A stretch of 64,000 bases of DNA from Caecitellus pseudoparvulus. Taxonomy: Eukaryota; Protista; Bigyra: Bicosoecida. Location: assembly GCA_965644315.1 (NCBI GenBank), contig CBFFRQ010000057.1, positions 496,001-560,000 on the forward strand, written 5' to 3'. Both the position numbers and the translations under genes were made by a program. The stretch's first letter is position 1; every line of letters starts with the position of its first letter. Positions 3,967 to 60,977 of this stretch are shown in pieces. The notes under the pieces were generated by a model. The model searched no databases. It was not told the origin of the DNA and worked only from the letters and a program-made list of their open reading frames with translations.

Positions 3967-4635
3967 ATGAGTGCTGCTCGATCCAGTGAAGGGGCGGCCG
4001 CTGCCCGATGGGGGCGAGAGGCAGGCAGTGCGAGGTACGGCCAGCGTGGCGGAAATTGCTCCAGCAGCCTGCGTCATTGGCGCACCCCCCCCTCCCTGTG
4101 CAGAGGTCGAGAGCGCAGCCGCAGTCCGCCACAGCACCGACACGGTGATGTGCGACCTTGGTCCCGCCGCACAGCGGAGGATGCATCCCCCAGCCGGCGA
4201 CCTCAGCGGTGGCAGGAGGGCGGCGCCAGAGGTGACGAGCGGTCTTCGCGGCGGGCCCCTGGGCGCTACGATGCGCGGGCAGAGGAGCAGCGTGGCCCCC
4301 CTGCCCAGTCCAAGAAGCATGCAGATCAGTTTGCAGACAGTGACGACGACGAGGACGCCAGTGGGGAGCGGGGTGGCGGGGCTGCTGCGCCAGCGAAGGC
4401 ACGCGACACGTCGGCACTGCCCATGGTGCCTGCTGGCATGGAGAAGATGCCCGAGGAGGAGCTGCTGGCGCAGTTGATGGGCATGCAGAGCTTCGGCTCC
4501 AGCAAGGGCCAAGGCGTGGACGACAACAAGTACGGCGACGCACGAGGGGGCATGCGCAAGAACCAAGTGCGCAAGTACCGGCAGTACATGAACCGTAAGG
4601 GCGGCTTCAACCGCAGCCTGGACAAGATCAAGTGA
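3967..4635 (+). CDS. SNRNP27: U4/U6.U5 tri-snRNP 27 kDa protein
   Basis: RS-rich N-terminus plus the diagnostic C-terminus MGMQSFGSSKG...RKYRQYMNRKGGFNRSLD. The start codon and a possible intron near 4035-4104 are uncertain. Confidence 0.9.
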   Translation: MSAARSSEGAAAARWGREAGSARYGQRGGNCSSSLRHWRTPPSLCRGRERSRSPPQHRHGDVRPWSRRTAEDASPSRRPQRWQEGGARGDERSSRRAPGRYDARAEEQRGPPAQSKKHADQFADSDDDEDASGERGGGAAAPAKARDTSALPMVPAGMEKMPEEELLAQLMGMQSFGSSKGQGVDDNKYGDARGGMRKNQVRKYRQYMNRKGGFNRSLDKIK

Positions 4636-42358: not shown

Positions 42359-45300
42359 TCACTCACTTGCCGTGCTGTGGCTGGCCTGGCTGCCCTCCTC
42401 GGCCTCCGGCGGCTCCACGTGGTCGCTGGCCTGGCTGGCATCCGACGAGGCGCGGCCTGGCAGGGCGCGGTGCCTGGACTCGGGTGGCGGCGGCGGCGGC
42501 GGCTGAGGGGTGCCCGGCCGACTGCCGTCCTGCAGGGCGGGGCTCTGCCCCCACAGCTCTGCGCCCATCCACAGCCGAGTGTCTGGGGCTCCCTGTGCCT
42601 TGGGCCTGGGCAGGTCGCCAGGCCCCCCAGCCGACGCTGACCCCTCCTCGGCGGAGCTGTCCAGGCGGTGCAGCAGCCACACCACCTGCTCCCGCAGGCG
42701 CACCAGCAAGGGAGACGTGAGCGTGCCCACCACGGTGATGGTGAGCACCAGCAGGTACACCTTGCGAGACAGCATGCCCATGGCGTGGGCTTTGCCCGTG
42801 AAGGCCAGGCCGAATTCAGCCATCTGCGCCATGGCCACCGCCGCGGTGGCGGCCGTCGTCGCCTGCAGGCGGAAGGCGCGCAGGATAATGTACAGGAGGC
42901 CTGCTTTGGCTGCCAGCAGGAAGGCCAGGGCTGCCAGGAGGACCCACGCGTGGCGCAGCATGAAGGTGGGGCTGAGTACCAGCCCCACGGACGCCAGGAA
43001 CATGGCCCCGAACAGGCCTGACAACGGTGTGACAGCGGCCGTGAGGGTGGGGATGGGGTACGGCGCGGCAGAGGCCAGGGCCAGCCCTGCGACGAAGGCG
43101 CCCATCTCCAGCGACAGCCCCATGAGCTGGGTGGTGAGGGCGCCCACCAGGCAGCTGCTCACCAGCCCCAGCAGGAAGATGTCGGCACTGCTCTCCCCGG
43201 AGCCCTCCTCGGGGGAGCCTTGCAAGGGCATGTGCAGCCCCGAGCAGCACCGCTGGCGGCCGACGCAGGGCAGGCGCGCAGCCAAGGACGCCCATGCCGT
43301 GGCGGCGCCGCGCTGCAGGGCGCCCCGGGACAGCAGCTGCACGAGGGCCACCAGGGCGGCGAAGGCGATGCCCGACTGCAGCAGGGACCAGGCCGCCAGC
43401 AGCGCGCCGTCCATGTCGCTGATGCCCAGGGCGCTGGACAGGGACCAGGCGGAGCCGGGCGCCTCGTGTGTGCCGCTGCGCACCTCTGCCGCCGCCCACG
43501 CGTTGGGCATGGACAGCAGGAAGCCCATGATGAGGTCCTGCACCGCCAACATGGCCAGGGACACCTGCCCGCCTTGGGACGACAGGGCGCCGGCCAGCTG
43601 CAGGTTGCCGATGGCCACGGCGGGGGAGGACAGGGACAGGGCGAGGCCGACGAGGAGGCCCTCTGAGGGGCCTGCTGTCAGCCCCGTGAGGGCCCCCCCC
43701 GCCATGGTCACGGCGGTGAAGGCCAGCATGAGGAGGACGCTGGCCTGCACAGCCGCGCGGGTGGTGGCGACGGTGTTCTTGAACTTGGACCCGAACAGCA
43801 TGCCGTTGCGGAAGAGCGGGAAAACGACGCCGAACTGCGCGACGCTGGACACGGCGGGTGTGCTGTGCAGGATGTTGAAGCCGTTGGGGCCCACGGCCAT
43901 GCCCATGACCAGGAAGCCGAAGCCGGGCGGCAGGTGCAGCGCAGAGAAGGCCAGCCCCCCCAGCGCCGCCACGCACATCAACACGCCGATGTCCTGCAGC
44001 AGGACAATGTCGTAGTGCAGCATGGCTGGGTCGGGGAGCAGGGGCGCCTCTGCGTCAGGCCCCGCCACCGGCGCCCCCTGCCGCCCCCCGTCAGCCGCGT
44101 CACCGCCAGCGGGTGGCCCGCCCAGCGCCCCCTCCGCCGGGCGCTCAGGAGGGCCTGCGCCCTGCCCCTTGCCGACAGAGTGCTCACCGTCGCCCCACTG
44201 CGCATGCCCGGCGCGGGCCTGGTCGTGCAGCTGCTTGAGGCGCTGCATGGCCTCCCCCGAGGACATCTTGCTGCCGTCCTTCAGCGTCACCATGCCCGTC
44301 TCGTAGTCCACCTTGCGCTGCTGCAGGGACTTCATGATGTCGGCGATCTCTGCCTCCGCGGCGTCGATGGCCTGCAGCTTGGCCAGGTGGGCCTGAGTGG
44401 CTGCCAGGGTGGCGGCAGTGCCGTTGAAGCGCTGGATGAGCTGCCCCACTGCGCCGGCCAGGGCTGCCACGCGGTCCTGCTCGGCCACCTTCTGCCGCAT
44501 GTTGTGCTGCAGGGCGTGCTTGAGCATGGCGTTGGCGTTGGCCAGGCGGCTGTGCACGGCGCAGGGGCAGAGGCGCTGGGCAAGGGGGGACGCCTCCTCA
44601 CACGCGGTGCGGGCCCGCCCGTGGAAGGAGTCGGCAGCCAGGAAGCAGACGGGCGCAGCTTCCCCAGGCAGCAGGACAGCTGCAGGCTTCTCGCCGCCCT
44701 CCATGGCCAAGCACTTGCTGTCCCCGCCGCAGCCGAAAGCGGCGTTCAGCATGGCGCACTCGTTCACCTCCGGGAAGCCGTCCTCGTCGCAGGCAAGGTC
44801 CCCCTCCCCCACGCGGTGGCAGGCAGCGGCACAGTCCTCGCCCACGTGAGACCGCACGTGCACGAGTGCGGGCCGGGGCGCCTGGCCAGGGGGCTGCTCG
44901 GGGCCACTCCCTGCCCCCCCCCCGCTCGACCCGCCACTTTCCGCAGCGCTGCCGCCCTCCACACGCACGATGTCGGCGGCGGCGGCCTGCTTCAACTTCG
45001 CCATGACGGCAGCCTGTGACACGGATGACTGCTCTTCTTCCACTTCGTTGTCGCCTGCGAGCGCCAGCGTCTCGTTGTCTTTGCGCAGCTCTGCTGCGTT
45101 CTCTGCCAGCAACGCCTGCAGCTCAGCCTGCACGTCCACGGCTGCCTTTTCCCACGCGACGCCGCCATCTCCCGCCCCGCTCTCCGGCTGCTGCGCCGTG
45201 GCGTTCACGACTTCGGTGTGGTCGACTTCTTCGGATGCGTAGTCTGCAGGCACGCCTGCACCACCCGTGAGAGGTGACGGCGGAGGGGTGGCGCCGGGGT

Positions 45301-45499
45301 GTGAAAGAACCCCCTCAGGCTGCAAGCCCTCAAGGTCCATGCCCGCCGCTGTTGTGCTAAGGACTGGCCTTTCAAACACCTCCTCCGACTCTTCAGAGGC
45401 GGTCAGCCGCTGGTGCTGCTCCCCTGCACCTGCCCTCGCTGCCAGGGCCAGCAACAGGACACAGGCGGCAGCAAGGCTGAAACGCCATGTCGCGGCCAT
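42359..45499 (-). CDS. CPA2-family K+/H+ antiporter (KEA4-6/TMCO3-like) with signal peptide, Cys-rich lumenal module and coiled coil
   Basis: DPAMLHYDIVLLQDI, G...GP.G, VAQFGVVF.LF..G, LSLSSPAV, LAVQD, GLSLEMGAFVAG, FLASVG, AQMAEF. Confidence 0.9.
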   Translation of the reverse strand: MAATWRFSLAAACVLLLALAARAGAGEQHQRLTASEESEEVFERPVLSTTAAGMDLEGLQPEGVLSHPGATPPPSPLTGGAGVPADYASEEVDHTEVVNATAQQPESGAGDGGVAWEKAAVDVQAELQALLAENAAELRKDNETLALAGDNEVEEEQSSVSQAAVMAKLKQAAAADIVRVEGGSAAESGGSSGGGAGSGPEQPPGQAPRPALVHVRSHVGEDCAAACHRVGEGDLACDEDGFPEVNECAMLNAAFGCGGDSKCLAMEGGEKPAAVLLPGEAAPVCFLAADSFHGRARTACEEASPLAQRLCPCAVHSRLANANAMLKHALQHNMRQKVAEQDRVAALAGAVGQLIQRFNGTAATLAATQAHLAKLQAIDAAEAEIADIMKSLQQRKVDYETGMVTLKDGSKMSSGEAMQRLKQLHDQARAGHAQWGDGEHSVGKGQGAGPPERPAEGALGGPPAGGDAADGGRQGAPVAGPDAEAPLLPDPAMLHYDIVLLQDIGVLMCVAALGGLAFSALHLPPGFGFLVMGMAVGPNGFNILHSTPAVSSVAQFGVVFPLFRNGMLFGSKFKNTVATTRAAVQASVLLMLAFTAVTMAGGALTGLTAGPSEGLLVGLALSLSSPAVAIGNLQLAGALSSQGGQVSLAMLAVQDLIMGFLLSMPNAWAAAEVRSGTHEAPGSAWSLSSALGISDMDGALLAAWSLLQSGIAFAALVALVQLLSRGALQRGAATAWASLAARLPCVGRQRCCSGLHMPLQGSPEEGSGESSADIFLLGLVSSCLVGALTTQLMGLSLEMGAFVAGLALASAAPYPIPTLTAAVTPLSGLFGAMFLASVGLVLSPTFMLRHAWVLLAALAFLLAAKAGLLYIILRAFRLQATTAATAAVAMAQMAEFGLAFTGKAHAMGMLSRKVYLLVLTITVVGTLTSPLLVRLREQVVWLLHRLDSSAEEGSASAGGPGDLPRPKAQGAPDTRLWMGAELWGQSPALQDGSRPGTPQPPPPPPPESRHRALPGRASSDASQASDHVEPPEAEEGSQASHSTASE

Positions 45500-45793
45500 G
45501 TGGCAAGCCCACAACCAGCCCCAAACCTGCTCCCAACGCAATCAAGCCTTGGGCTATGTCCAGACCTGCGGCTTTGTGCTTGACTGCACAGCCGGCTTAA
45601 GGGCTGCTGCTCAATGCGGCACAGACCCTTCCAAGCAACGTGGCTAATGGTGGCCCTAATTCCGCAGCTTCGCGTCACTGCGCAGCGGCTCCACACTGCG
45701 TGTGCGGTGACAGCAAGGAGCCTATGGTGTGCGCTGAAGATAATTGCGGTGGATTGAATTGCCTGCATGTGATGCATGCGCACGGCATTGCCC

Positions 45794-48700
45794 TCACAGC
45801 TTGCTGGCTCCAAACACACGCACACTGGCGATGCGCGCCGTCGCTGCCATGCCAGGGGGCGCCTGCTGAATGCGGGCCAAGGCAGCGGGGTCTGTCGGGG
45901 ACAGCATGTGGTTCACACGGTGCTCCACGCGGCACCCCATGCAGCAGCTGAAGAGGTAGCTGCGGCACTGTGCAGTGAGGGAGCCTTGCCGCACACGCTC
46001 AGCCACGCCCCGCTGCGGCTGCAGGCTGCGCGGCGTCACAGCCCCGAAGGGCACCCCACAGCACATGCACGACAGCGTGGACAGCAGGGGGGTTCCACGA
46101 GCAGCCAAGATGAGGGCGGGGTCCCCACGCTGCGCAGCCCCTCGCAGCCGCCAAGGCAGGCAGCACGCCAGCGCCGAGGGGCAGTGCAGCACGATGCACG
46201 AGGCGAAGGACCTGCGCAGGGCCACGGCACACAGGCCGGCGGGGAAGTAGCAGGGGGGGGGCAGGGAGGACCGCTGCAGGTACCGCCAAAGCATCTCGAT
46301 GCGGTAGACGTTCCACGCGCCACGCGACGTGTCCCGGGCGGTTTGGTAGCTGTCCCCCAACACGGCGATGAGGATGTTGAGGAGGATGATGAGGGCGACG
46401 ATGAGGTACAGGGCCATCATGGACACGCCGAGGGTGACGAGGGGCTGCACAGTGGCCTGCCCCGAGTCCACTGCGAAGTCCACGGGCAGCTCCCAGTCCC
46501 CGAACACGCTCCAGAGCAGTGCGGAAATGTCCCCCACCGAGCTGTTGCCGAAGGGTGACACGACGTAGATGGAGATGAGGGGGATGATGAAGGACGCCAC
46601 CACCAGAGCGAACAGCAGCAGGAAAATGAACACGTCCACCATGGAGAACGCTGCACCGTTGGCGATGGTGAAGACGCGCGGGCCCAAGTATGCGCCTGTG
46701 CTCAGGTACTCCAGCAGCAGCGGGTACGAGATGAAGGCGAGGATGATGAGGGTGCCATACGCGAGGATGTCCGTCAAGTAGCCCAAGCACTCCGAGCCGG
46801 TTGTGCGGGACATCCAGGCGACCACCTGGCAAACAGCTGCCAGGGCTGTTAGGGCGTACTTCAACATGTTGGCCTTGGCCAGCAGGAGGCGAAACCGCCC
46901 CGCACCGCCGCCCACTAAATCGGACAGGGCGGCAGACAGCGACCACCAGAACAGCAGCACGCGCAGTCCGATGGAGAGGTCCAAGGAAATGCGATTCGTG
47001 AGGTGCGGCTCGTAGCTGTGCGCCCCTGCCACAGTGCTGCCTCCACTATTGTCGTCGCACGTGAGCATGTCCCGCAAAACGCCTGGCTCTGACGCACAGC
47101 AGGCGTCGTGGTTGGCGAACCCGCCCTCGCTCGTCAGCAGCACAGCTGAGTGCAGGGCTGCGAAGGCGAGTTCGGACATGCCGTACATGGCATGTTTCAC
47201 GGCGGGCGGGAGCAGCGGCGGGGTCGCGGGGCCGTACGCAGCTGTTGACGGGTCCAGCAAGGGCGCTGCCTCCAGGCCTGTGCCGTCGTCGTCGTCGCCA
47301 CCACCCTCCGCCGCAGCCTCCTCTGCTGCCTCCAAAACAGCATCCTCCTCTTCGTCGCTGTCTGAATGCAGCCGGCGCTGGGTGCTGCCCCTCCCGGCCG
47401 CTCCCAGTCGGGACCTGGCGATGACAGAAGCGCTTCGCGTTCCACTGGGTGCTCCAGGCTCCAGCACAGCTTGATGGCGCTCCAGGGCCACGCCAGCTGC
47501 GCCCCCCTCCATATACGCCCGGCTCCAGACATCTTCCGAGACACTGGAGAGCCCGGTGCTGCCTAGCAGGGGGGGCGGCAAACTGCCTGGGTGTGTGCCA
47601 GACAGGGCCGCGGACTGCTGCGACTGGTGAGTCCCCAGGGACGGCCCGTGGAGAGGGGAAAAGCCAGGGGACATCTCCGTGCTAGAGGGGGGCGGCGGGC
47701 GCAGGGGGGAACCAGCGGTGGCAGTTTGGGCGCGCAGGGGAAGGGGGCCCGTGGGGGGCGACACCAGTGGACTGCCCTCCTCACCTTCCCCACGCGCGGC
47801 GTCCCCTGCCGCTTGCCCGCCGCCCTCCTCCCCCTCCCCCTCCTCCTCCTCCTCCTCTACGTCAACCAGGCCCACGAGGCCTGAGAAGGTGCCTGTGCGC
47901 GTGAAGGGTGCTGGCTTGGCCTCCCGCGCCGCCTGCTCCAGGTCGGCGAAGGCTGCCTGCTCCAGGCGCTTCAGGCGCCGAGCCAGGGCGTGCATGCTGG
48001 GGCGGGCCTCGGGGTCCAGGGCCCAGCAGGACGCGATCAAAGATCGCAAGCCAGGCGGGGTGTCCTTGGGCAGGCGGGACTCCAGGGTCATGCCTTCGGC
48101 CACGCTCAGCTTCACCAGCGCCTCGCTGTCGCCACGCCACGGGAGCTGCCCGCCGGTACACATCTCCCACAGCAGCACGCCAAAGGCGTACACGTCAGAG
48201 GCGCGGCTGACCTGCCGGGCTGCGCCCAGTGTCTCCGGGGCACCCCATCGCACCCTGGGCTCCGACGAGGACGGCAAGGTGACGAACTGCAGCGGCTCCA
48301 CACCGGGGCTTGCAGCGGTGCCGCCCAGGGCAAGGGTGGAGTCACTGCGGGCCAGGCGCCGGGTGGGCTTGCCCTCGTTGGTGCCGCTGGGCTGCACCAG
48401 CACGGCGTTGCCCAGGTTCGCCACACAGGCATGCAGGACGGGGCGTGGCGGCAGGCTGGGCGCGTCTGCCCCTGTCTCGCTGCGGGTGCTGTCGGAGCGC
48501 ACGCCCCGTGAGAGGTCAAGCACAGAGTGCCGGCGCACCTTCGCTGCCAAGTGCCCGTGGGCCGTGGCGTCGCCGCCCTGGCTGCTGCCCAGGCCCTGGT
48601 GTTCATCCCAACTGTCGGAACACCGCAGCAGGACATTCGCGCTGCACAGGTCGCAGTGCAGGACGCCGGCATCGTGCAGCACCGCGACGGCGTGTGCGAC

Positions 48701-51700
48701 CTGCCGTCCCAGTCGCATGACGTCGATGAAGGTCCACAGCGGGGCATACGCCACCGCTGCCGCGGCGGCGGGCAGGGTCATGGCGGTGCCGGACGCGAGC
48801 ACTGCCTGCGCTGCCGCCATGTCTGCAGCCGGGATGTCCTGCTGCATGTCTGGCGCCTCCCACCGTACGCCTGCCCACTGCAGGGGCGGGGAGGGCTCAT
48901 GCTGCAGGGCCCGGGCCTTGTGCAAGGAGGCTAGGAAGCGGTCCAGGTTGCCGAGGGGGTAATACCCCATGAGGATGCCTGCCACGCGCACTGCCACCGT
49001 GCGGCCGATGGTAAGCACGCCGCGCTCCTTGGCTGTCTGCAGCGCCTCGCTGGACACCTCGCGCTCTGCCTCCAGCTCCTGACTGGACTGAGCAGCCAGC
49101 GTGGCGCTGCCACGCCGGGAATGCACGGGGGAACGCACCGAGGGCAGGTCCCGCACTGGAGCTGTGATGACGCTGTACACGCGGACGAGCGTGGGGGGCA
49201 GCACACGCAGCAGCTCTTGCATGTTGCCCAGCACGTTCTGCCCACTGCTGTACAGGCGGGCTACGGCGTGCGTGTCCAGCATGTCCCCTCCATCCTCGGC
49301 CCTCTGCGTGGCCAAGGGCGGGGCAGGGGGGGGTGCAGTGGGCGGAGGCGGGGGCGCACCCCGCGCCACGCCCGCAGACTCCGCCGCCTCGCCCCCCTCC
49401 TGCACCGTGTCCAGGGTGCCCCGCATGTGCAGCGACGCTGCCAGGGCGCTCACACCCTTGCGCCACCGAGCACGAGAGCGCGCACGGGAGCGCAGCAGTG
49501 CCCACACCAGCAGACGCGTCCAAGCAGCAAGCTCCGTGACCAGGCTCTGCTCACCAGCCACACGATCCCTGTGCGTACCGCGCCGCAGCTGCAGCGCCGC
49601 CATGGCACCCTGGGCCTCTCCGCCCGCCACGGCTGAGCCGGGGAGCAGGGGGGACAGCGCCGTCCACCACGCAGGCACTGTTCGAAGCATGAACAGGTCC
49701 GAGTGACTGCCCATGGCTGCTTGCTGAGCCCACCCGGGCAGCTGCCCGTCCGCCGTGGCCCACCGAGGGTGAGCCCGCAGCAGCATGGCCTGCGGCGTGA
49801 CAGTGACGGCACGCCCCACCCCGCACAGCGTCAGGTCCAGCTGGGGCAGCACCATCAGCGCCAACTCCTGCGCTGCGGAGCTGAGCATGATGCCCCGCTG
49901 CCCGCTCACAGACCTGACGCCTGCCATGAGCGTGTCGCCCTGTGGCTTGCCGGCGTCGGGGTCCACGAGGCCCTCGCCCTCCCCAAACAGGGCCGCCACC
50001 CGCGCCCGCACTTTGGCCTGCCGAGTCACCTCCATGCGCAACTCGAAGCCCGGGCGCCGGTCTGCTGCAGGGCGGTGCAGGCTGCTCGAAATGCCACTAG
50101 CGTGGGACAGGGCACTGCTGGCGCCGGCGCCCTCTGGTCCCACGGAAGCCTCCTCCGCGAGATCGGACGCCACGCCCCATCGGGAAGAAGTGCTGCTGCT
50201 GACGGAACTGAAGGCGACAGAGGCGCCCTCATCATGCACCTCGTCAGTGGTCTCCACCGGCAGGGCGATGGCCGGGGCCGGCCGCTGCCGCTGCTGCCGC
50301 CGCGTGGCCTCCTTGCGCAAGGCTGCGAAGGCCTTGGCCTCAGGCGCGTTCCAACGCCGCAGCGCTTCCATGGCCCCCAGCAGGCGGGCCCAGTGGATGG
50401 GTGAGATGCTGGCTTCTTGCCTGTCTCGCTCGCGCAGCGCAAACACGTCCAGCGTCGAGCGCACGCCCAGTCCAGCCAAGTTGCGCGTGATGGCTTGTAG
50501 ACGGAAGCGCTGCAGGAACATGGTCAAGTCCGCCAGGGGCCAGCCACCCCCTGCGTCCCTGCTCGCACTTGCATGAAGTGTGGAGGCGCGCAGCTTGGCG
50601 CGCAGCGCTTGCATGCGCGCCCGGCGTGCGGCGCCCAGCTGTAGACGCACCACGCCTTGCACTGCCAGGATCCCCGCTGCCCCCGGCCGGGATAAGCGGC
50701 TGCGAGACGAGGCACCCAAGGACGACCCAACGGTGCTCGAGCGGCCTGCCAAGCGCAGCATGCGAGAAGACAGTCCGGGCGGTGGCGCGGCCTGCGCTGT
50801 GGGGCGCGGTGGCGCGGCACACCACCAACCTCGTGCCGCGGAGGCCTTGCTGAGCTGTGCCCCGGCCTTGGCCTGTCGGGAGGAGTTGAGCCATGCAGAG
50901 AGAAGCGTAGCCTGGGCCTCGCCGTGCAGCCACACGCCGCTGTTCCAGACGTTGCTGATGAGCAGTTGCACGACGTCCAGTGCCAGGAAGCGGCGGCAGC
51001 CTGCTCGAACGGCCAGCTTCAGCATGTTCTTGTGGGTGCCTGAGAACGACAAGCCTGGCAGCTGCAACGCCCAGCCCAGCACATCTCGCGCGTACAGCGG
51101 GTCGAACGGCGTGAACAGGAACGTGCGAGTGATGTTTGTGTGGTACGGTGCCAGCAGCACCGCCAAGGCGGCATCCACAATGGCCCACGCAGGCTCAGCG
51201 GGCGTGAGGAGCCACATGGCAGCTTGCGCCTTCTCCTTCTCCGTCCAGTGAATGCTGACGCTCTCGTCGTGCACCGCGGTGAGCAGCTTGATGGCGAGGC
51301 TCTCGAACACCTCCCCCTGCTGCTGCAGCTCCTCAACGTCGTTCAACACGGACGTCTGCGACAGGGATCCCTGGTCTGCCAAGCGCCGCAGCACGAGCGT
51401 CACCAGCAGAGCCGTGCGCAGGGGCTGCGTCGTGTGGCTCAACAGGGCGATGGCGACGCGGAACTTGCCGTTCACGGCGGCCCACACGATGCGCAGGACG
51501 CGAAGCGCCTCTTGGCACTCAGCAAGCCATCGAGGCTTCTGATGAATCGTGATGCCTGCCGCTGCTCGCGCGTCCTGCAGCGCTTCCTGCCCTGCGACGC
51601 CCGCTGGCGTAGGGGGGCCGCCATGACCCATGGAGTCTTGACTCGTGACGTGCATCAAGTTCCTGGAGCTGGCGGTGTGGGCCACAGCCGCGGCGACGGC

Positions 51701-54700
51701 TTCCGGCGCGGGCGTGGCTGTGGCTGTCGCGGATGGCGCGCCCAGCTCCTCTGCCCTGCGCCGGGCGGCATCCACTTCAGCCTCCAACATGAGCGTCCTA
51801 CCGTCAAAGAACCGGACAAACGCCGTGTACCAGTGCAGCAGCCGCTCCGTCACGAGGCGTGTGGAGGCGTGGGCAGTGGGCAGCACGAAGCGCCGGCCGT
51901 GGTGCTGGGAGCTCGCTGAGCGAGCCGAGGTCAGGCGCAGCGCAGTCGTGTCGAGCGCGTTGCACACTTGCCGGGACAGCAAGTGGAAGGGGTGGGGGTC
52001 CTCCAGCAGCCCGTTCTTCAGCAGGATGTTCACCAGCACCGGGTCGTCCTCCAACCACGCGAAGCTGAGAACGTCAGCCAGCACGACCCGCTCAGACTTG
52101 GGCATGGGCCGCCGCCGTGCCCGCCGTCGCTGGGACAGCACCTCATGGATGAGCGTGTCGCAGTCCCACAGCGCGGACATCTTCAGCCACTCGCGGCCCT
52201 GGCCCTCGTGCAGCGGCTGCCCTGGGCTGGGCGCCAGGCGCCGCAGAATGGACGTGCGCAGGCGAATGGCCGAGGCTGGCGTGTGCGGCACAAAGGAAGC
52301 CTCCACTGCCGCTGCCCCCCCCTCGCCCTTCGCTTCATGCTGCCCGGCGCCCAGCTCGCGCTCCAACGCCAGGAGGCGCTGCGTGCTTTGATCACGGGAC
52401 AGGGATACACCCACCTCCTGCTGAGACTCCAGGTCTGCCTCCAGCCGCCCCACCCTTGCCTGGGCCGCCTGGGCGGTGGGGGCTTTCGGCCTGTTTGAGG
52501 CAGCTTCGTCGGCGCCCAGGAGCTGCAGCACTGCAGGCGCAGGCACGGCTGACGTACCTTGGCGAGAGCCGTACTCAGCCTGCTGAATACGCTCGATGAC
52601 GATGACGCGGCCGACACGCCCCGTGCCCCCACCCGCGCTGGGCGTGCTGCTGTGCAGCAGCCGGACAGCCGCCCGCCCCCACACACCCTGTGACACGCTC
52701 ATACCGGAGTGCGTGCTGGTCAGGCCGCCTCCCCATGCAGCGTTGCTGCCTTGCTGCAAGAAACAGTTGCGCCAGGCGCCATGCCAGACCTCCCCCAAGG
52801 CGCATGACCGCGCACCGCCAGCAGTGGCGAAGCCCGCCTGCACCACAGCCCGCGCCTTGCCCCAGCACTGTGCCATGATGCTGCCGTACTGCGCCAGTAC
52901 CGCGGCATACGTCATGGGCTGCCTCCTGAGCAGCGTGCGTGCCACAAGCCACGCCAGCTTGCAGAATGCGGAGCGGCGCAGAGGAAACAGCGGGTTGGCG
53001 TTGCTGGGGTCTGCCGCACACGCCTGCTGCCACAGGCAGTCCACCAGGATGGGCGGGAAGGTCTCGCTTGGCAGCAGCCACTGGCTGCTCAGAGAGTCCT
53101 GCGACAGCTGCTCCGGCGGCAAGGTCAAGCCGGCGCTGGGCGCCGCCCAAGCAAGCGATGCCGGCACCCCCGGCAAAGGCGTGCGGGCCGCCACCTCCCG
53201 AACAGCCAGCAGAGCCTCGTCCACAGCCAAGCAGGGTGTGGGCAGCTTCGCCAGGGCTTCGGCGCCCTGCCGTGCTGCGGCAAAGGCAGCCACGTGCGCC
53301 GCCGCCCGAGCCCTGCCTGGCGGACCAGCCACGGGCCCGGAGGTCGCTGCGCCTGGCGCATTCCCAGCGTCGTACGCAAGCGACGCCGACACGCCTTCCT
53401 TGACGTACTGAAGCAGCTTTCGCACGAGGGAGCGGGCAGAGGGAGCAAAGGCCACCGAGCCAGAGTACCGGGCCTGGGCCAGAAGGGCACTCCGCTCCAG
53501 GGACAGATCAGCGAGGGTGCTGGCCAGGCCGAAGGTGGCGTTGGCGTAGGCGAGGGCCATGCCGCCTGCTGAGCGTGAGGAGGAATTGCCCATAGCGTCC
53601 AGGTTCTCCCCCCGCGTGTGTGTACCCAGCAGGACAGTGGGACTGCTGGTCATGAGGGAGCCGTTGGCAGACTCCCCAAGGACGGCAGCAGTGTTGCTCC
53701 AGGCGGCTGACGTGCGGGCGACGGCGTCCGAGTACACCGCATCTGCCGCCTCTTCTGAAGCAGACAAGACGTGCTGTGCGCCGCCTCCCACGTGGCTCAG
53801 GGTGGCCGGTCCGACGGCTTCCATGATCAGGCGCCCGTCACGGTCATCGGCGCTGAAGCCGGGGCTCAGCTGCTGGTACGACGTCAGCTGGCTGCTGTGG
53901 TACAGCATGACCAAGTCTGTGAGGTCCCCCCCAATGACAAATCGCACTGCCGCATGCAGGGGCATGATCATCTCAAAGCTCCGGCGGAAGGCAGCAGCCA
54001 CACTGGCGTCGTGCGCAAGCACGGGGGAGTGCCGAGGCAGCGCCAAGTCCCCTGCCGTCACCGGCGCCAAGTATCCCTCGTCCGTCTCTTCTGACGGCTG
54101 CACGTCATCAGACGACAAGTGGACGGCGGCATCCATGACACCCCCTCCGCCCGCATCTGCTCCAAAGGCGCCAATGAGGTGGTCGCCAGAAGCGTCCGGC
54201 GTCGGCGAGGCGTCACCTTCCTCCGGGGTGTCATCCCCCACAGCAGCGCTGTCCAGCCCGTCTCGGCGATTCTGGAAGCCCAGGAGGTGCGCCACCGTGG
54301 GCACATCCACCGCCACATTGGACGAGCCAAATGGGTGCTGGTTGTCCTCGCCAGACGAAAACGTAGAACCCAGGTCGTCAGCGGAGTCGGGGCCGGGTCC
54401 GCCTGAGGGACGGCGGACCCGGCGTCCGGAGCCTGTCATGACCGCCGACGGCCGAATAGGGGTGCCTGGCGTGTCCTCTTCGTCAACAAAGATGAACAGG
54501 GAATGCGTCGTGTCCAGCCCGCTCTCTGTGGGTGTCCAGCATTGAGCAGACAGCCCACCTGAGCTGCCACCGCCGGGTCCGCGGCCATCAGCAGCCTGGC
54601 CCAGGGATGCTGTCAGGGCAGCCAGCACGGAGCGCTGCGTGTCAGGGGGCATGGGGGCGAACCAGTGCGTTGGCAGGGCGGCCATGCGGTCGAGCGGCGG

Positions 54701-57700
54701 CGTGTTGGTCATGCCGATGACTGGCCGAGGGCGGCTGCTCTGAGCATTGACCTGCGCGACGAAGCCATCAGCCCCCTCCGCTGACCCATCCGTGATGATC
54801 CAGGCCTTGCCATCTCCAGCTGCCGCCGCTACCTCCCGGACCAGGTCACGCGTGGCAGAGCCAAGGCGCCCAGCGCGTTGGTCCTGGCTGTCCACCACAC
54901 TGATGAGGGTGCTGGGCACGTCCATGCCAAACAGTGGGGACAACTTGGACTTGCCGTGGCCGAGAGGCATGCCTTGCGCGTCAGCCGCGTGGCTGGCCCC
55001 CCAGTCTGAGCCGATCAGCCACAGGAACAACTGCCTCACGTTGCACCGTGGCCCCACTCGCACAAACGGCACCCACGAGGTGATGAGCCCTGCCACAGTT
55101 GGGTCTGCCACGCCGCGCCGGCCGTCAGCGATGTGGCTGGCCCAGCCGTCTGCCAGGTGGCTGGAAGCCGACTGCAAGCTGTCGGAGATGAAGCTGTCAT
55201 CCAGGAAGGGGATGCGGCCCCAAGCCAGGACACCCGGAGGGGGCGGCGGCAGCGGGGGCAGCTCCACCGTGGACCCCTGGCCATCCGCATACCGCACCTT
55301 AGCACCGGCTGATGCTCGCAGGGCGTAACGGGGCAGGGGAAGACCTGTCCCAGCCTCCCCATGGTGGGGCGTCAGGTGCAGGGCGGTGCACACTGGGTCC
55401 TCCCGCAGCCTGCTGATGGTGGTCGCAGGCAGGGAGCCCGCCACTGCCTGCTTGCTGCGCAGGAGGCGCACTTGCTGCGCGTCTGCGGCATGCCGCCCCG
55501 TCAGCACGTGGGACACCCGCGCGCCGCGCTTGAACAAGAGGGAGGCGACCAGGTGTGGGAAGCATGGCAGCGGCACCGGGAGGGGCGTGCCCAGAGAAGC
55601 CTCGGGCACGGCCTTTAGTGCCCTTGCCACGAGGAGGGGCACGGGGCTGCCATCCACGGCTTGCCGACCGCCTGCATGAGCAAGGCGCTGCCTGCCGCCC
55701 CCTTCTCCTGGAAGGTGCGCAGGCAGCTGCAGCGTCACGGTGAACGGAGCACCCAAGGACACGCTCACCGCTGCGTCGTGGTGCAGTGCGATGCCCATGG
55801 GGTGGGCAGCAGTGTCCAGCAGCTCCATGGGGTCTGCCACGGCGTGGGCCTGCCCCCCATGCACAGCTGACACCAGGTCCTGCTCAAAGCCCCTAGCAGC
55901 AGCGGCGGTGTACACGTTGTCTGCAGAGGTGGCGAGGAAGGATAGCTGGCTGGCGTCAAAGCCAGAATCCAGGAGGAAGCGCAGCGTGCTGAGGCGGCTG
56001 GCGTGCTGCTTCTCCAGCTCGCCTTCCGCTCTGGTGGTTACTGGCACGACAAGGAAGGGCGACGGCTGCGTCGCTGCAGCAGGCTGCTCCGCTGACGTGG
56101 CTACCCGCGCGCCTGGCCCCCCCCTCCCTTTGCCCAGCGTCGCGACGAGGGAGTTCGTGACTTCCAGGAGCCGCCCCCACAGTGCTGACTGCACCCGGGT
56201 CGGCAGAAGGCTGCTCAGGATGCGGTGGAAGCGCACATCCGAAGGCAGTGGGCGGAAGACGACCAACTGCACCTGCACCTGCAGCGCCTCTTGCAGGGCC
56301 TGGGCCGCGTTGGGGGCTCCAGGCGGCGGCAGAGGGCTCATGGGGGTGATGACGGGGATAGCTTGGGGGGGGATGTCTGGGAACATGTCAACATCGTCCA
56401 GGGATGCCAAATACCGCGCGATGCCCCAGTTGCCCGTGCGGAAGGCAATGCTGAGGGCAGAGTCCCCGCTCACCGCCGACCGCACGTTCACGTTGGCACC
56501 CGCCACCTCCACCATGTAGCGTACGAGGGACACCGGCGCACCCCCTGCCATCCCACACACATGCATGAGGGCCGTCCAGTGCTCGGTGCTCGGACCCAGC
56601 AGCCCTGCTGCCTGCTGGTCCAGGCTGCGAAGTTGGTGTTCCAACAGGGCCAGAGGCGCTCCCACCTCGTCGGCAGCACTCTCAAGCCGTGCTGCAAAGG
56701 GTTGGCTCAGTCGCACGGCGATTTGACGGTGCACGGCCTTGGGGAAGAGGGGTTCGGATGGGTCCAGGCCGGCACCCCCCGGCACCCCAGCCGAGTGCGC
56801 GAACGCCTGGCAGCCCGCAGCCAGCAGCGCTCGAGCTGCTCGGATGCGAGCTGCCAGGACTGTCAGGGCATCACTCGGCTTTACTGCTGCGGTGGTGGGC
56901 TGGTGCAGGGGGGGGGCACCAACCTCCCCCTCGCCTGCCAACGCCAGCTCTGTCGCTGCCTCTCCCGGGGCAGGTGAGTGTACCAGCCACGACGCCAGCT
57001 CGGTGTGGGCACCAGTGGAGTCGTGCCCGACGGCCCCTTTGAAGCCCTCTAACAGCCGGCGCACCCGGCGCTGTGACGCCTTCTCCAGCGTCGCGTCCAT
57101 GCGCGCAGCCACTGTGCGGTTTGGGAGGGCCCCCGCCATTCCCTCGTCCAACAGCCCCTGCAGCTGCCCCAGCACCTCTGACGTGCTCACGAACTCCCAC
57201 GCGCTAAGCAATTGGTGCACGATGTCTTTGTGGCCGGAGCGGGCGGCGTGGTACAGAGGCCCCCGGCCATGAGAATCCTGGTGAGCCATACCGCTGCCCT
57301 TCCACGACAGGGGCACTCGCCCCCCAGCGCCGCCGCCGCCGCTGGTCTGCCGAGAGGGCGAGCCGGGCACCTCCGCGCTACTGGCGCCGCCGTCTTGGTC
57401 ATCTGCCGCCGCCACATACATGGTGTGCACGTCGGACGGGAAGAAATCTACTTGTGGGTCGGAGTACACATAGAAATCGAGCAGTTCCTGCACCGCCTCC
57501 TCGTGACCCCCCCTGCAAGCCGCGATGAGGGGGGTCTGCAGTCGCGGGGGCGTGTGGTCCGTCATGGGCGACGTGGCCATGTGGTTGGCTGTCAAGTACA
57601 ACCGTCTATACAGCAGGGGCAGCATGTCGTGCAGTGCGGCCGCATCCCCTGCCGCTGCAGCAGCAGTCATAGCGTTCACCGCTTGCTGCCTCAAGGCGGC

Positions 57701-59229
57701 AATTTGACGCCGCACACCTGCACCTGACGAGGACCCCTCTGCCCGTGCGTCGCCAGACATAGATCCGCTCATGGAGTGCGCTATCGCTTCAAACTCTCCC
57801 TGCGCCGCTTCCAGTGCATCTGACTCACGCAGCGCGTCCTCTCCAGATTGCACGGCTGCCTTCAGGGCCGCCTGTCGTGCGCTCGACGCCATGGACTGTA
57901 GGAGGTCATTGCAGCCTTGCAACACCCCCATGCACTCGCGGATGAAGGGGTTCTCCTCCTCCTGTAGTCCGCCCTGCACACCACCGTGCAGGGCGGCCTG
58001 GCGGGCAGCCATGTCCAGGCCCAATGTGCCCATCTGCAGAGAGGGGATGCGGCAGGAGCCGCCGCCCCCGCCACCGTCCTCCCCACTCGCATCGCTGCCC
58101 GCCTGGTCGTCAGAGTCGGAGCCATGCCTCGAGGTGTCACCATTTCCCTGCCGCCGCAGGGATGCCGCGTGTGACGCGCGCATGCTCTCCGCACGAGCCT
58201 GCTCTCGACACAGCAGCATGCTGCGAGCCGCGACCTCGCTCGTGCCGTCTAGGCGGTCTGTGCCGAGGAAAAGGCCGCGCAGGGACGTGTTGGACTTCAC
58301 GCCCCCGCACAGGTCCACAGTTCCCTTGGACCCCAGCTCCGTATAGGACACACTCAGGTGTTGCAGGTGGCGGTTCGTCACCAGCATGCTGCCCAGCGCT
58401 GCACCGCTAGCAGGCCCCAAGCAGTTACTAGAGAGACGCAGGCGCTCCAGGGTGTTATTGTAGCGAAGGGCCTGGCACATGGCACCCACTCCACTGTCCC
58501 CTAGCCTATTCCCCGTCAGCAGGAGCTCCCGCACACCCCCTCGACGGATACGGGGTGGGGCCCGCTTGCTGCCCTCCTGACAACTGGGGTGGGCTAGCAG
58601 CAGGCATAAGGATGGGACAACATCCGCTGAGAGCTGGTTTCCATCCAGCTGCAGAGAGCTGGTGCCGCTGAGCCCTCCTGAGTATGCAATGGCGGCGGCC
58701 GCGGCACAAATGAAGAGGCCTGGTGGTGGCCAGCAGTTGGTCACAGCCAGTGTGGATGGAGCAAAGGGAGACCCCAGGGCCTGCCAAGCAAGAGAGGTGC
58801 TGGCAGGTGGCAGTTCGCAGCGTTGAAAGCGCAGCATTTCAAGCCTGTGGCGGAGGGGCATGGGTGGTCTGTGTGAGAAAGCGAGCTGGCAGAGCGGTGC
58901 CTGGCCGCGACGCACGATGCAAGGCTCCTGTCTGATGCGCAGGCGGCGTTTCGGGTGCACACAGCATGCAGCACTGCATCCACCAGCTGCGAGGGGCTGT
59001 GATCGGGCCCTCGCAAGGCCCCGACGATGGACAGCTCCGCCAGCGTGCGGGGCAGCGGGGCCAGCTGCAGCTGCTCAACGAGCTCTTGCTGGAACGCGAG
59101 CGACTTGACTCGAAAGAGCAGGGTGCTGGCTGAGGCTTCATATTGCACATGTTTAGGGAACTTGTCAGCGAAGGCTTCCCATGACGCATGCAGCAGCATG
59201 TGCGCGGGGGCGTCCTGGCTTCCTGACAT
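45794..59229 (-). CDS. Giant TRPM-like cation channel (~4,439 aa): LRR - ankyrin - SLOG/MHR1-4 - SAM - TK-like pseudokinase - 6TM channel - TRP box; exons 59229-58961, 58844-45794
   Basis: 13-kb open frame. MHR motifs: PFVRV, PSTLISV, AWIITDG, LDTTHSLFIFVD, WAAVNG, LKLAV...F......Q....VW. Channel motifs: LGPRV, WSVFGD, LLNILIAVL, WNVYR, LPPP. A phase-2 intron at 58960-58845 joins the upstream ATG exon in frame. Confidence 0.9.
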
Positions 59230-59445: not shown

Positions 59446-60977
59446 CTATCCACGGCCCCCTCCCCACCAGAAGCTCACAGAAATGGACGCTGTCTCAGCA
59501 CGCACGTGGTGCCACCAGCCAGGGGGGATGTACAACATTTCACCGGGCTGCAAGTGCACGTAGGTGCAGCTCAAGCCAGGCGCACGTGCACCGCTCCCAT
59601 GCCCCGGCTCCTGCTGCCTCGAATATGGCGCCAAAGTGGCAGTGTTCCACGCCGCCCCACCACATGACGTCAGCGCTGATGAAGCGGTGGGGGGTAGTAA
59701 AAGCACAGTCTTGCAGCCAGCCACCTGCGCGAGAAGGTTGTGTGGCTCGTCAAAGTGCAGGTTGGAGGTGGTGCCTGCCGGCCCCAGCCAGATTTGCTGC
59801 AGCACCTCTGTGTCGCCGTAGCCGCTGACTGTGCGTGGGTGCCACCAGTGCTCTCCCACGCGTACTTCAGGGGCTCCTCCATGAGGCTTCACGCTGTGGT
59901 CACTGTCTGCCCGAGCACGCTTTGCAGCTGGCGGCTGCAGGTGGTGCAGTAAGGCGAGGTCAGGGATGGGAGCAGCCGACTGCAGGGAGGGCACTTGCTG
60001 CACCAGGCAGTGCTGGGCGAGATATTTGATGGGTACGCGCGGCTTTGCGTGGGGACAGGCGTCTGCTGCACACATTTGACCCAGCACAGCAGACGTGGGC
60101 TGTAGGCGCTGCGACCACCCCTCCGCCATGTACGAAGCCCCCTCCTCCACCGGCACAGTTCTGTGCCCCAGCAGTGCATGCCAGAACCTTAGCGAGTGCC
60201 ATTTACCTTGTTGAAAGGCCGGCCAGTGGCCCATGCTGCCCCGGACGACAGCCGGCGCCCCAGCTGCAAGGCAGCGAGATTGGAACTCCAGCGCAGTCGG
60301 GGAGTGCAAGACGGCCACAGGAGAGATCGAGCCTCCCAGCAGTCCAATTGGCAGTGGCCAGTGTGAACAGGTGCAGTGCGCATTCAGGGTGCAGCTGCAG
60401 CTGCATGGGGCCGCAGGGGGCGGCAGGGCTTCCACCAGGCTCTGGGCTACCTCAGCGTCCAGTGCATGCCCCAGCATGCATGCGACATCCAAGGCCTGGA
60501 AAATCGAAAGAAGGGACTGCTCTGGAATGGAACTATCTTTAGACAGTGAAGACAACTGAATGCACACGCGTAGCCTTGCAAACAGGCTGTACAAGTGCCT
60601 CCAACCGGGATGCACCTCCTTCCAATTACCGCAGTGCAGCGCATTCCACGCACATTGCTGCAGGCGGCACAGGGCCGGAAGAAACTGCAGCAATTTGCCT
60701 GTCTCTGCTTGCATAATGTCATTGCTGAGGGTTTGGATGTCGGACAGGCACGCAGCACAACCAGGACCTGAAATACAAGGAAGGCGAGCAGGTACACGCA
60801 CGGCGAGCAGGTGTCCATGCAGCAATGCTCACCTGCCCCGTCACACAGCGCCTGCAAGGGCCCATGAACTCGAGCCGCATGAAGGTCTCGTTCCAAGACA
60901 CTGACTGCTCTTCTCCTTGCCAAGCCCAGGTCGCGGCAGCCTGCCTCCTTCCCGTCTGCCGGCAGCTCGGCAGCCAT
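59446..60977 (-). CDS. KDM8: JmjC-domain hydroxylase JMJD5/KDM8 (one intron near 60767-60832)
   Basis: AWNALHCGNWKEV, HWPA, RTVPVEEG, YLAQH, WLGPAGT.S.LHFD..HNLLAQV.G.K, PGEMLYIPPGWWHHV...S.SVSFWW. Confidence 0.9.

Follow-up and report, generated by a model that had tools for sequence, protein, structure and literature searches.

Work on TRPM channels has dealt almost exclusively with animals and the unicellular organisms most closely related to them. In TRPC channels, a SLOG domain is missing, and the linker helices are immediately preceded by four ankyrin repeats. TRPM and TRPS channels are defined by their melastatin region; SLOG domains bind nucleotides, and the first two TRPM homology regions (MHR1/2) bind ADP-ribose in zebrafish TRPM2 (PMC13143021). 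In TRPM6 and TRPM7, the very C-terminus is formed by an alpha-kinase that vertebrates acquired, and the fusion of SLOG and channel has been placed in 'a rather early eukaryote', with no sequences of distant groups given to show this (PMC13143021). The ancestor of TRPS and TRPM was inferred to be linked to SLOG and Nudix domains and free of ankyrin repeats (PMC7306681). Among protist TRP proteins, PKDRR of oomycetes joins RyR domains to a polycystin pore (PMC7399828), and TRPW of choanoflagellates has WD40 domains and its own TRPW-clade pore (bioRxiv 10.64898/2026.06.15.732245). Here, we analysed a stretch of 64,000 nucleotides from Caecitellus pseudoparvulus (Bigyra: Bicosoecida; GenBank assembly GCA_965644315.1, contig CBFFRQ010000057.1, positions 496,001 to 560,000 of the forward strand), which is called the window in the following and to whose first letter all positions refer. 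Its minus strand holds an open reading frame (ORF) of 4,388 codons. We read the encoded protein as a very large TRP cation channel subunit, whose core would be a highly divergent TRPM-type channel with leucine-rich repeats (LRRs) and ankyrin repeats, inserts and a kinase-fold module added, and assign this reading a probability of about 0.68.

The proposed core comprises a SLOG-like MHR1/2 region, a helical MHR3/4 region, six membrane segments (S1-S6), an acidic pore filter and a TRP helix. To this core, about 1,290 residues bearing RI-type LRRs and ankyrin repeats would have been added at the N-terminus; the SLOG region would have received inserts both within it and behind it; and a third addition, some 1,250 residues long and placed between MHR4 and S1, would contain the degenerate kinase fold of Tyr/TKL-like type. 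Observed directly were the reading frame, the selection acting on it, the content and order of the domains and their conservation in a second species. The features of the protein, with residues numbered as amino acids (aa) of the main ORF and identities given to the diverged relative L001 introduced below, are:

45794..58960 (-): main ORF, 4,388 codons plus stop
58241..58663 (-): RI-type LRRs, aa ~100-240 (LRR_6, E 2.1e-10)
56399..57538 (-): ankyrin repeats in three clusters, aa 475-854 (Ank_2, Ank, Ank_3)
53861..55081 (-): SLOG-like MHR1/2 region, aa ~1294-1700 (sub-threshold LSDAT_euk match, language-model neighbours)
54041-54478 (-): low-complexity insert of ~145 residues splitting the SLOG-like region
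52301..53860 (-): conserved block without fold assignment, aa ~1700-2220 (~52% identity to L001)
50891..52279 (-): MHR3/4-like helical region, aa ~2228-2690 (PF25508, language-model neighbours)
50945-51022 (-): pre-S1-type motif within the MHR3/4-like region
50360..50527 (-): conserved block of ~56 residues, aa 2812-2867, formerly called a SAM domain (45% identity to L001)
47960..49288 (-): protein-kinase fold with a long insert in the activation segment, probably a pseudokinase (PK_Tyr_Ser-Thr)
46253..47050 (-): putative membrane domain, pore and TRP helix, aa ~3971-4236 (hydropathy, PDB alignment)
45797..46252 (-): Cys-rich C-terminal tail with a conserved end (comparison with L001)

An earlier note on this DNA, made from the letters alone, had claimed one giant polypeptide, and an uninterrupted frame was indeed found from 58960 to the stop codon at 45794-45796 on the minus strand. 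This frame measures 4,388 codons when counted from the first start listed, and 4,426 codons between the two stops. Long spurious frames do arise in GC-rich DNA, and the GC content of the window is 58-73%. The frame could therefore be an artefact in which at least two adjacent genes or retained in-frame non-coding DNA are read as one, or from which the kinase block is spliced out; this would be helped by the absence of visible coding periodicity over the initial 100 codons of the main frame and by the fact that the single-gene reading and the 5' end are taken from the DNA alone, a point that also weighs against the channel reading as a whole. We consider such an artefact very improbable. At the base composition of the window, stops are expected at about 2% of random codons and random frames close after about 50 codons; since the ORFs in other frames across the same DNA reach a maximum of 150-430 codons, the 13.2 kb kept open here are no effect of composition. 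The GC content at third codon positions was 0.71-0.85 in each 300-codon block, while the adjoining intergenic DNA has 58-59% GC and contains stops.

For the analysis of selection, the main ORF was compared with an environmental contig (L002, protein P0001) of 98.6% identity across 17.5 kb. The 145 differences fell at codon positions one, two and three in the numbers 35, 19 and 91, and 94 of them were synonymous and 51 non-synonymous; the sole indel comprised 6 bp and was in-frame. The ratio of non-synonymous to synonymous substitution rates (dN/dS; Nei-Gojobori) was 0.19 overall and at most 0.38 in each block, linkers included. The main ORF is under purifying selection over its whole length, and third-position bias and low dN/dS persist in every block, against what an artefact would leave. 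A pseudogene was ruled out by the dN/dS of 0.19. A second, diverged relative of about 50% identity (L001, protein P0002) on a contig of 10.4 kb is collinear with the giant protein from aa 1614 to the C-terminus. Identity amounts to about 52% in the scaffold, 34-41% in the part with the SAM-like block and the kinase fold and 57% in the C-terminal piece with the channel, or 63% when channel residues are taken alone. The only frame change in this relative, at L001:1415-1480, lies inside long G runs coding for a Gly-rich linker; its position within a poly-G run points to a homopolymer indel of the assembly, and it is probably not a real frameshift. In both species, scaffold, kinase block and pore thus lie in a single frame, which exceeds 9 kb in L001. 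We take the long ORF to be real, one gene of an intron-poor, GC-rich marine protist.

For the identification of the pore, the C-terminal 538 residues were searched against 177,635 PDB sequences (phmmer), which returned TRPM and TRPC chains only. The single sequence matched TRPM7 (4.5e-9), TRPC3 (5.6e-8) and TRPM3 (2.6e-7), with alignments spanning S4/S5, the pore helix, the filter and S6 to beyond the TRP box; with a profile of both species, 64 of 64 PDB matches at E <=0.001 were TRPM or TRPC. Over both searches, the E-values of these chains ranged from 4.5e-9 to 1e-4. This agrees with the TRP pore, S6 and TRP box described earlier. Of the features of TRP superfamily group 1, S5, pore helix and S6, the S6 asparagine and a TRP helix with a TRP box are present, and in the filter, the S6 Asn and the TRP box the protein can be aligned with TRPM7. 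The filter has the residues FGD (aa 4153-4155), with Asp at the position of the filter Glu of TRPM7 and more acidic residues following; the conserved Asn of S6 is at 4195, and the TRP box (aa 4216-4220) is followed by a Pro triplet (4234-4236). Hydropathy gave four strong hydrophobic segments (aa 4032-4050, 4058-4084, 4096-4139 and 4169-4208), corresponding to S3-S6. A predicted complex of four copies of the membrane domain scored 0.18, which is evidence neither way. The tail of about 150 residues behind the TRP helix is rich in Cys, Pro and Gly. Several conserved Cys pairs or triplets and the last ~35 residues are common to the tail and to L001; the conserved cysteines may be lipidation or metal sites.

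For the cytoplasmic scaffold, a Pfam library of 24,736 models was used, with cut-offs of 25.7 bits for LSDAT_euk and 27 bits for PF25508 (TRPM2-like domain). LSDAT_euk was the only Pfam match at aa 1345-1407, with E 0.029 for a 500-residue piece and E 0.0017 (18.2 bits) for a 170-residue piece. PF25508 was the top match at aa 2480-2567 (E 0.077 to 0.023; 15.3 bits) and recurred at the homologous place in L001 (E 0.11). Both matches are in the correct order upstream of a TRPM/TRPC-type pore, and, read as a directed test of the two named families, their E-values correspond to p ~1e-7 to 1e-6 each. A protein-language-model search returned 'SLOG in TRPM' as best named neighbours of the SLOG-like region (0.90; 188/256 features) and 'TRPM2-like domain' for the MHR3/4-like region (0.91; 188 features), the ten best named neighbours agreeing without exception in both searches. 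The second half of the SLOG-like region is strongly conserved in L001. When the two-species MHR3/4 profile was compared with the PDB, TRPM7 was the sole match, not significant at E 2.5, in two collinear stretches of which one is the motif just before pre-S1. For the block at aa ~1700-2220, no Pfam match was obtained. As in the TRPM channels of animals and choanoflagellates (e.g. TRPM2, TRPM7), the order would be SLOG-like MHR1/2, helical MHR3/4, S1-S6 and TRP helix. In the earlier note, SLOG/MHR1-2 and MHR3-4 had been named outright; their placement gains weak support from these matches, while the scores stay short of family level. TRPM membership rests on sub-threshold matches, and we regard a TRPM-type scaffold as likely, not proven.

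One clear SLOG protein, the only one of the genome, was observed (C65 of this genome, G000; L010:4237-9993, minus strand): an ORF of 1,919 residues with N-terminal WD40 propellers and a C-terminal SLOG domain (LSDAT_prok 3.4e-36, well above threshold), in which a channel part was not found. BLASTP of the SLOG-like region against this protein gave no similarity.

Several results weigh against a TRPM-type channel. The MHR similarity, at 18.2 and 15.3 bits, is below both family cut-offs, unlike in TRPM proteins; a phmmer search with aa 1297-2496 against 1.84 billion proteins returned only the near-identical copy, and genome-wide scans with LSDAT_euk, LSDAT_prok and PF25508 did not return the giant ORF. 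AlphaFold2 with alignments of three rows reached a pLDDT (predicted local distance difference test) of 30.1 for the SLOG region and 35.1 for MHR3/4 with the SAM-like block, and Foldseek with both low-confidence models yielded meaningless rows only, so that no fold was confirmed. The candidates for S1 and S2 are weakly hydrophobic, albeit conserved in L001. The C-terminal piece gave no coiled-coil or TRPM_tetra match in Pfam at E up to 10, i.e. the C-terminal coiled-coil (pole helix) tetramerisation domain of TRPM channels was not recovered. In the two-species pore profile, TRPC4, TRPC5 and TRPC3 tie with TRPM7 (3e-8 to 8e-8), whereas TRPM7 is best with the single sequence; from this tie, the pore gives the TRPC/TRPM group and not one family. 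Finally, carriers were found in two species, and the link to LRR and ankyrin repeats is visible in the lineage of the window only, because the L001 contig is cut at its 5' end and the N-terminal ~1,600 residues lie outside it.

Some of these points suit a different origin, namely a TRP channel of group 1 that is either TRPC-like or of a pre-TRPM/TRPC type, in which the SLOG and MHR matches would have arisen by chance and the cytoplasmic part would be a lineage-specific scaffold of helices and repeats. The level scores of TRPC and TRPM7, the failure of every TRPM-specific match to reach its cut-off and the lack of a recognised coiled coil speak for it; N-terminal ankyrin repeats occur in TRPC channels as well, whose similarity in pore, S6 and TRP box is as high as that of TRPM. 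TRPC channels also share a pre-S1-type motif of the kind seen at 50945-51022. We nevertheless consider this origin unlikely. Two distinct TRPM-specific families match in the correct order and as best or only matches on their pieces, an independent search by language model leads to the same two families, and TRPM7 is the only PDB match of the MHR profile. In addition, the ankyrin repeats are more than 3,000 residues away from the pore, far upstream of the TRPC position, with TRPM-specific families matching in between.

The divergent TRPM-type core would be preceded by repeats which are canonical. LRR_6 matched in three stretches, best at aa 167-189, and the ankyrin families reached 4.5e-14 (Ank_2), 2.4e-11 (Ank) and 6.7e-9 (Ank_3) in Pfam; the LRRs of RI type and the ankyrin repeats had been seen before and are borne out. 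The same note had compared the protein to an all-in-one immune or stress receptor. For this, whole-protein and piecewise Pfam scans offered nothing: NACHT, NB-ARC, ROC-COR, TIR and death-fold domains were not found, and no central NTPase (NACHT, NB-ARC or ROC-COR) as in NLR, STAND and ROCO receptors was recovered. With ROCO/LRRK-type proteins it has in common that LRRs, ankyrin repeats and a TKL-like kinase fold occur in one giant protein; it differs from them by the absence of a ROC GTPase or COR detectable with Pfam, by its domain order and by the attached channel. Word-indexed protein searches with the N-terminal 1,620 residues and with the pore (two length ranges) returned only P0001 and P0002, or nothing, and no relatives were found in two metagenome scans.

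The module between MHR4 and S1 holds two conserved parts. The first had been assigned as a SAM domain. Pieces of 80 and 200 residues with the SAM-like block gave no Pfam match at E up to 10, no SAM protein was among the matches of a profile search of the PDB, and the model predicted over the block has a pLDDT <50. What remains is a conserved block of about 56-60 residues, and calling aa 2812-2867 a SAM domain is a guess. The second part confirms the protein-kinase fold that had been noted. PK_Tyr_Ser-Thr matched with E 2.4e-24 to 5.6e-26 (86.5-91.8 bits against a cut-off of 23.1) and Pkinase with E 2.1e-15, so that Pfam places a eukaryotic protein-kinase fold of Tyr/TKL-like type above cut-off. 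The best PDB matches of the kinase block, at ~1e-14, were TYK2 (the chain holding its pseudokinase domain), PTK6, ROS1, MLK and FAK. Domains of the NUDIX and alpha-kinase families were not found with Pfam.

A chanzyme, as the protein had been called, needs a catalytically competent enzyme domain, and the kinase sequence does not read as one. The C-lobe is well conserved, with His-x-Asp...Asn kept in the catalytic loop (aa 3435-3442) and APE present (aa 3574-3576). The DFG position, however, reads NLG (aa 3515-3517), the activation segment has an insert of about 120 residues, the N-lobe is degenerate and barely detectable, no glycine-rich loop is recognisable in the kinase block and, by eye, the expected beta3 site (around aa 3228-3240) has a Lys in neither species. 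Because the DFG Asp, beta3 Lys and glycine loop cannot be recognised, the term chanzyme is probably wrong, and a pseudokinase or docking module is probably what this domain represents rather than an active enzyme. A true chanzyme, with a kinase active in an atypical way and phosphorylating the channel or partners, would account for the intact His-x-Asp, Asn and APE motifs in a whole C-lobe that is well conserved, for a kinase block in which the two near-identical strains differ by no non-synonymous change, and for the Asp that L001 retains at the DFG position (DLG). It would have to work with Asn in place of the metal-binding Asp in this species and with the N-lobe described above, and the TYK2 pseudokinase domain is part of one of the two top PDB matches; we rate a true chanzyme as quite improbable.

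The divergent TRPM-type subunit proposed here resembles TRPM6 and TRPM7 in that a TRPM-type pore and a kinase-type domain occur in one polypeptide. Its Tyr/TKL-like eukaryotic protein-kinase fold, unlike theirs, precedes S1 and looks catalytically degenerate. Since it lies before the membrane domain and is not a C-terminal alpha-kinase, the kinase fusion is independent of that in TRPM6/7, as the earlier note had proposed. From TRPM channels in general the protein is set apart by 3-4 times the usual length, by the ~1,290 N-terminal residues with canonical LRR and ankyrin repeats, by large inserts including the ~1,250 residues between MHR4 and S1, and by a Cys-rich tail in place of NUDT9-H, alpha-kinase or C-terminal coiled coil. 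Like PKDRR and TRPW it is a very large protist TRP subunit with unusual cytoplasmic domains, from which it differs in pore family and accessory domains; neither of the two papers reports LRRs together with a kinase fold. In the literature searched, with incomplete coverage, no TRP channel is described that carries LRRs, or whose scaffold houses a eukaryotic protein-kinase fold, and none with this domain order, in line with the novelty claimed before; the combination of LRRs, ankyrin repeats, TRPM-like scaffold, kinase fold and TRP pore was likewise not found there. A PKDRR-like chimera was also observed in the genome: a 3,767-codon frame at G000:C39:195867-207167 (+), listed together with L005:3867-9998 and L006:2-5164, in which ankyrin repeats, a pair of RyR domains and a polycystin domain are combined with a PKD_channel pore. 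The PKDRR family is known from oomycetes (PMC7399828).

On the model of solved TRPM and TRPC channels, the subunit would assemble into a tetramer of nearly 2 MDa. It would conduct cations, probably including Ca2+ or Mg2+ because of the Asp at the filter-Glu position of TRPM7 and the further acidic residues, and would probably be gated from the cytoplasmic side. As SLOG domains bind nucleotides and MHR1/2 of zebrafish TRPM2 binds ADP-ribose, the SLOG-like domain is the best candidate for a ligand site, where a ligand derived from a nucleotide could bind. For protein docking or allostery, rather than enzyme activity, the candidate modules are the LRR/ankyrin arm and the pseudokinase. Should the melastatin scaffold be true, this stramenopile channel would provide a distant outgroup for how the scaffold gates the pore, and with the kinase-fold module between MHR4 and S1, a kinase-type domain would have become joined to a TRPM-type channel for a second time, independently. 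The protein adds to the picture of protists building very large TRP subunits with unusual cytoplasmic domains, as a finding at sequence level from two environmental or isolate genomes. A more far-reaching scenario, which we put forward as doubtful, is that the SLOG-MHR-TRP architecture reached the stramenopile by vertical descent, the TRPM type predating the split of the animal and stramenopile lineages, and that this lineage made a megadalton cytoplasmic receptor-channel in which LRR/ankyrin repeats and pseudokinase would couple protein recognition, and SLOG a nucleotide signal, directly to Ca2+ entry.

The earlier start of the gene at 59229 lies in a different reading frame from the main ORF and would need an intron or frame change near 58650-58980. 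Two features were recorded at this 5' end:

58975..59229 (-): candidate first exon with ATG at 59229, in another frame than the main ORF (coding-type composition, periodicity)
58649..58974 (-): stretch without codon periodicity, possible intron of ~310-335 nt (periodicity and GT-AG pairs)

GC at the three codon positions of the candidate exon was 0.73/0.41/0.74, which is coding-type, and codon periodicity in the frame of ATG 59229 reaches down to about 58980. From there to about 58650 periodicity was not seen, and the main frame takes over from about 58648, after a good acceptor-like site. Compared with L002, 0.7% of sites differ in the candidate exon and 3.2% in the DNA directly upstream. Scanned alone, the exon matched no Pfam family. 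This suggests one intron of about 310-335 nt at the 5' end of an otherwise intron-less gene of 13 kb; GT-AG pairs preserving an open frame are many, hence several junctions are possible. Alternatively, the gene would start at codon 42, the ATG that comes first in the main frame, as the gene caller set it for P0001.

The neighbouring genes are ordinary eukaryotic ones (CLASP, ESCRT-II, JmjC), by which a bacterial origin was ruled out. On the same strand, the giant gene is flanked by a Na+/H+ exchanger of about 1,050 residues at 42359-45541 (-) and by a JmjC/Cupin_8 protein at 59446-60825 (-); the gaps to both flanking genes measure only about 250-480 nt, a compact arrangement.

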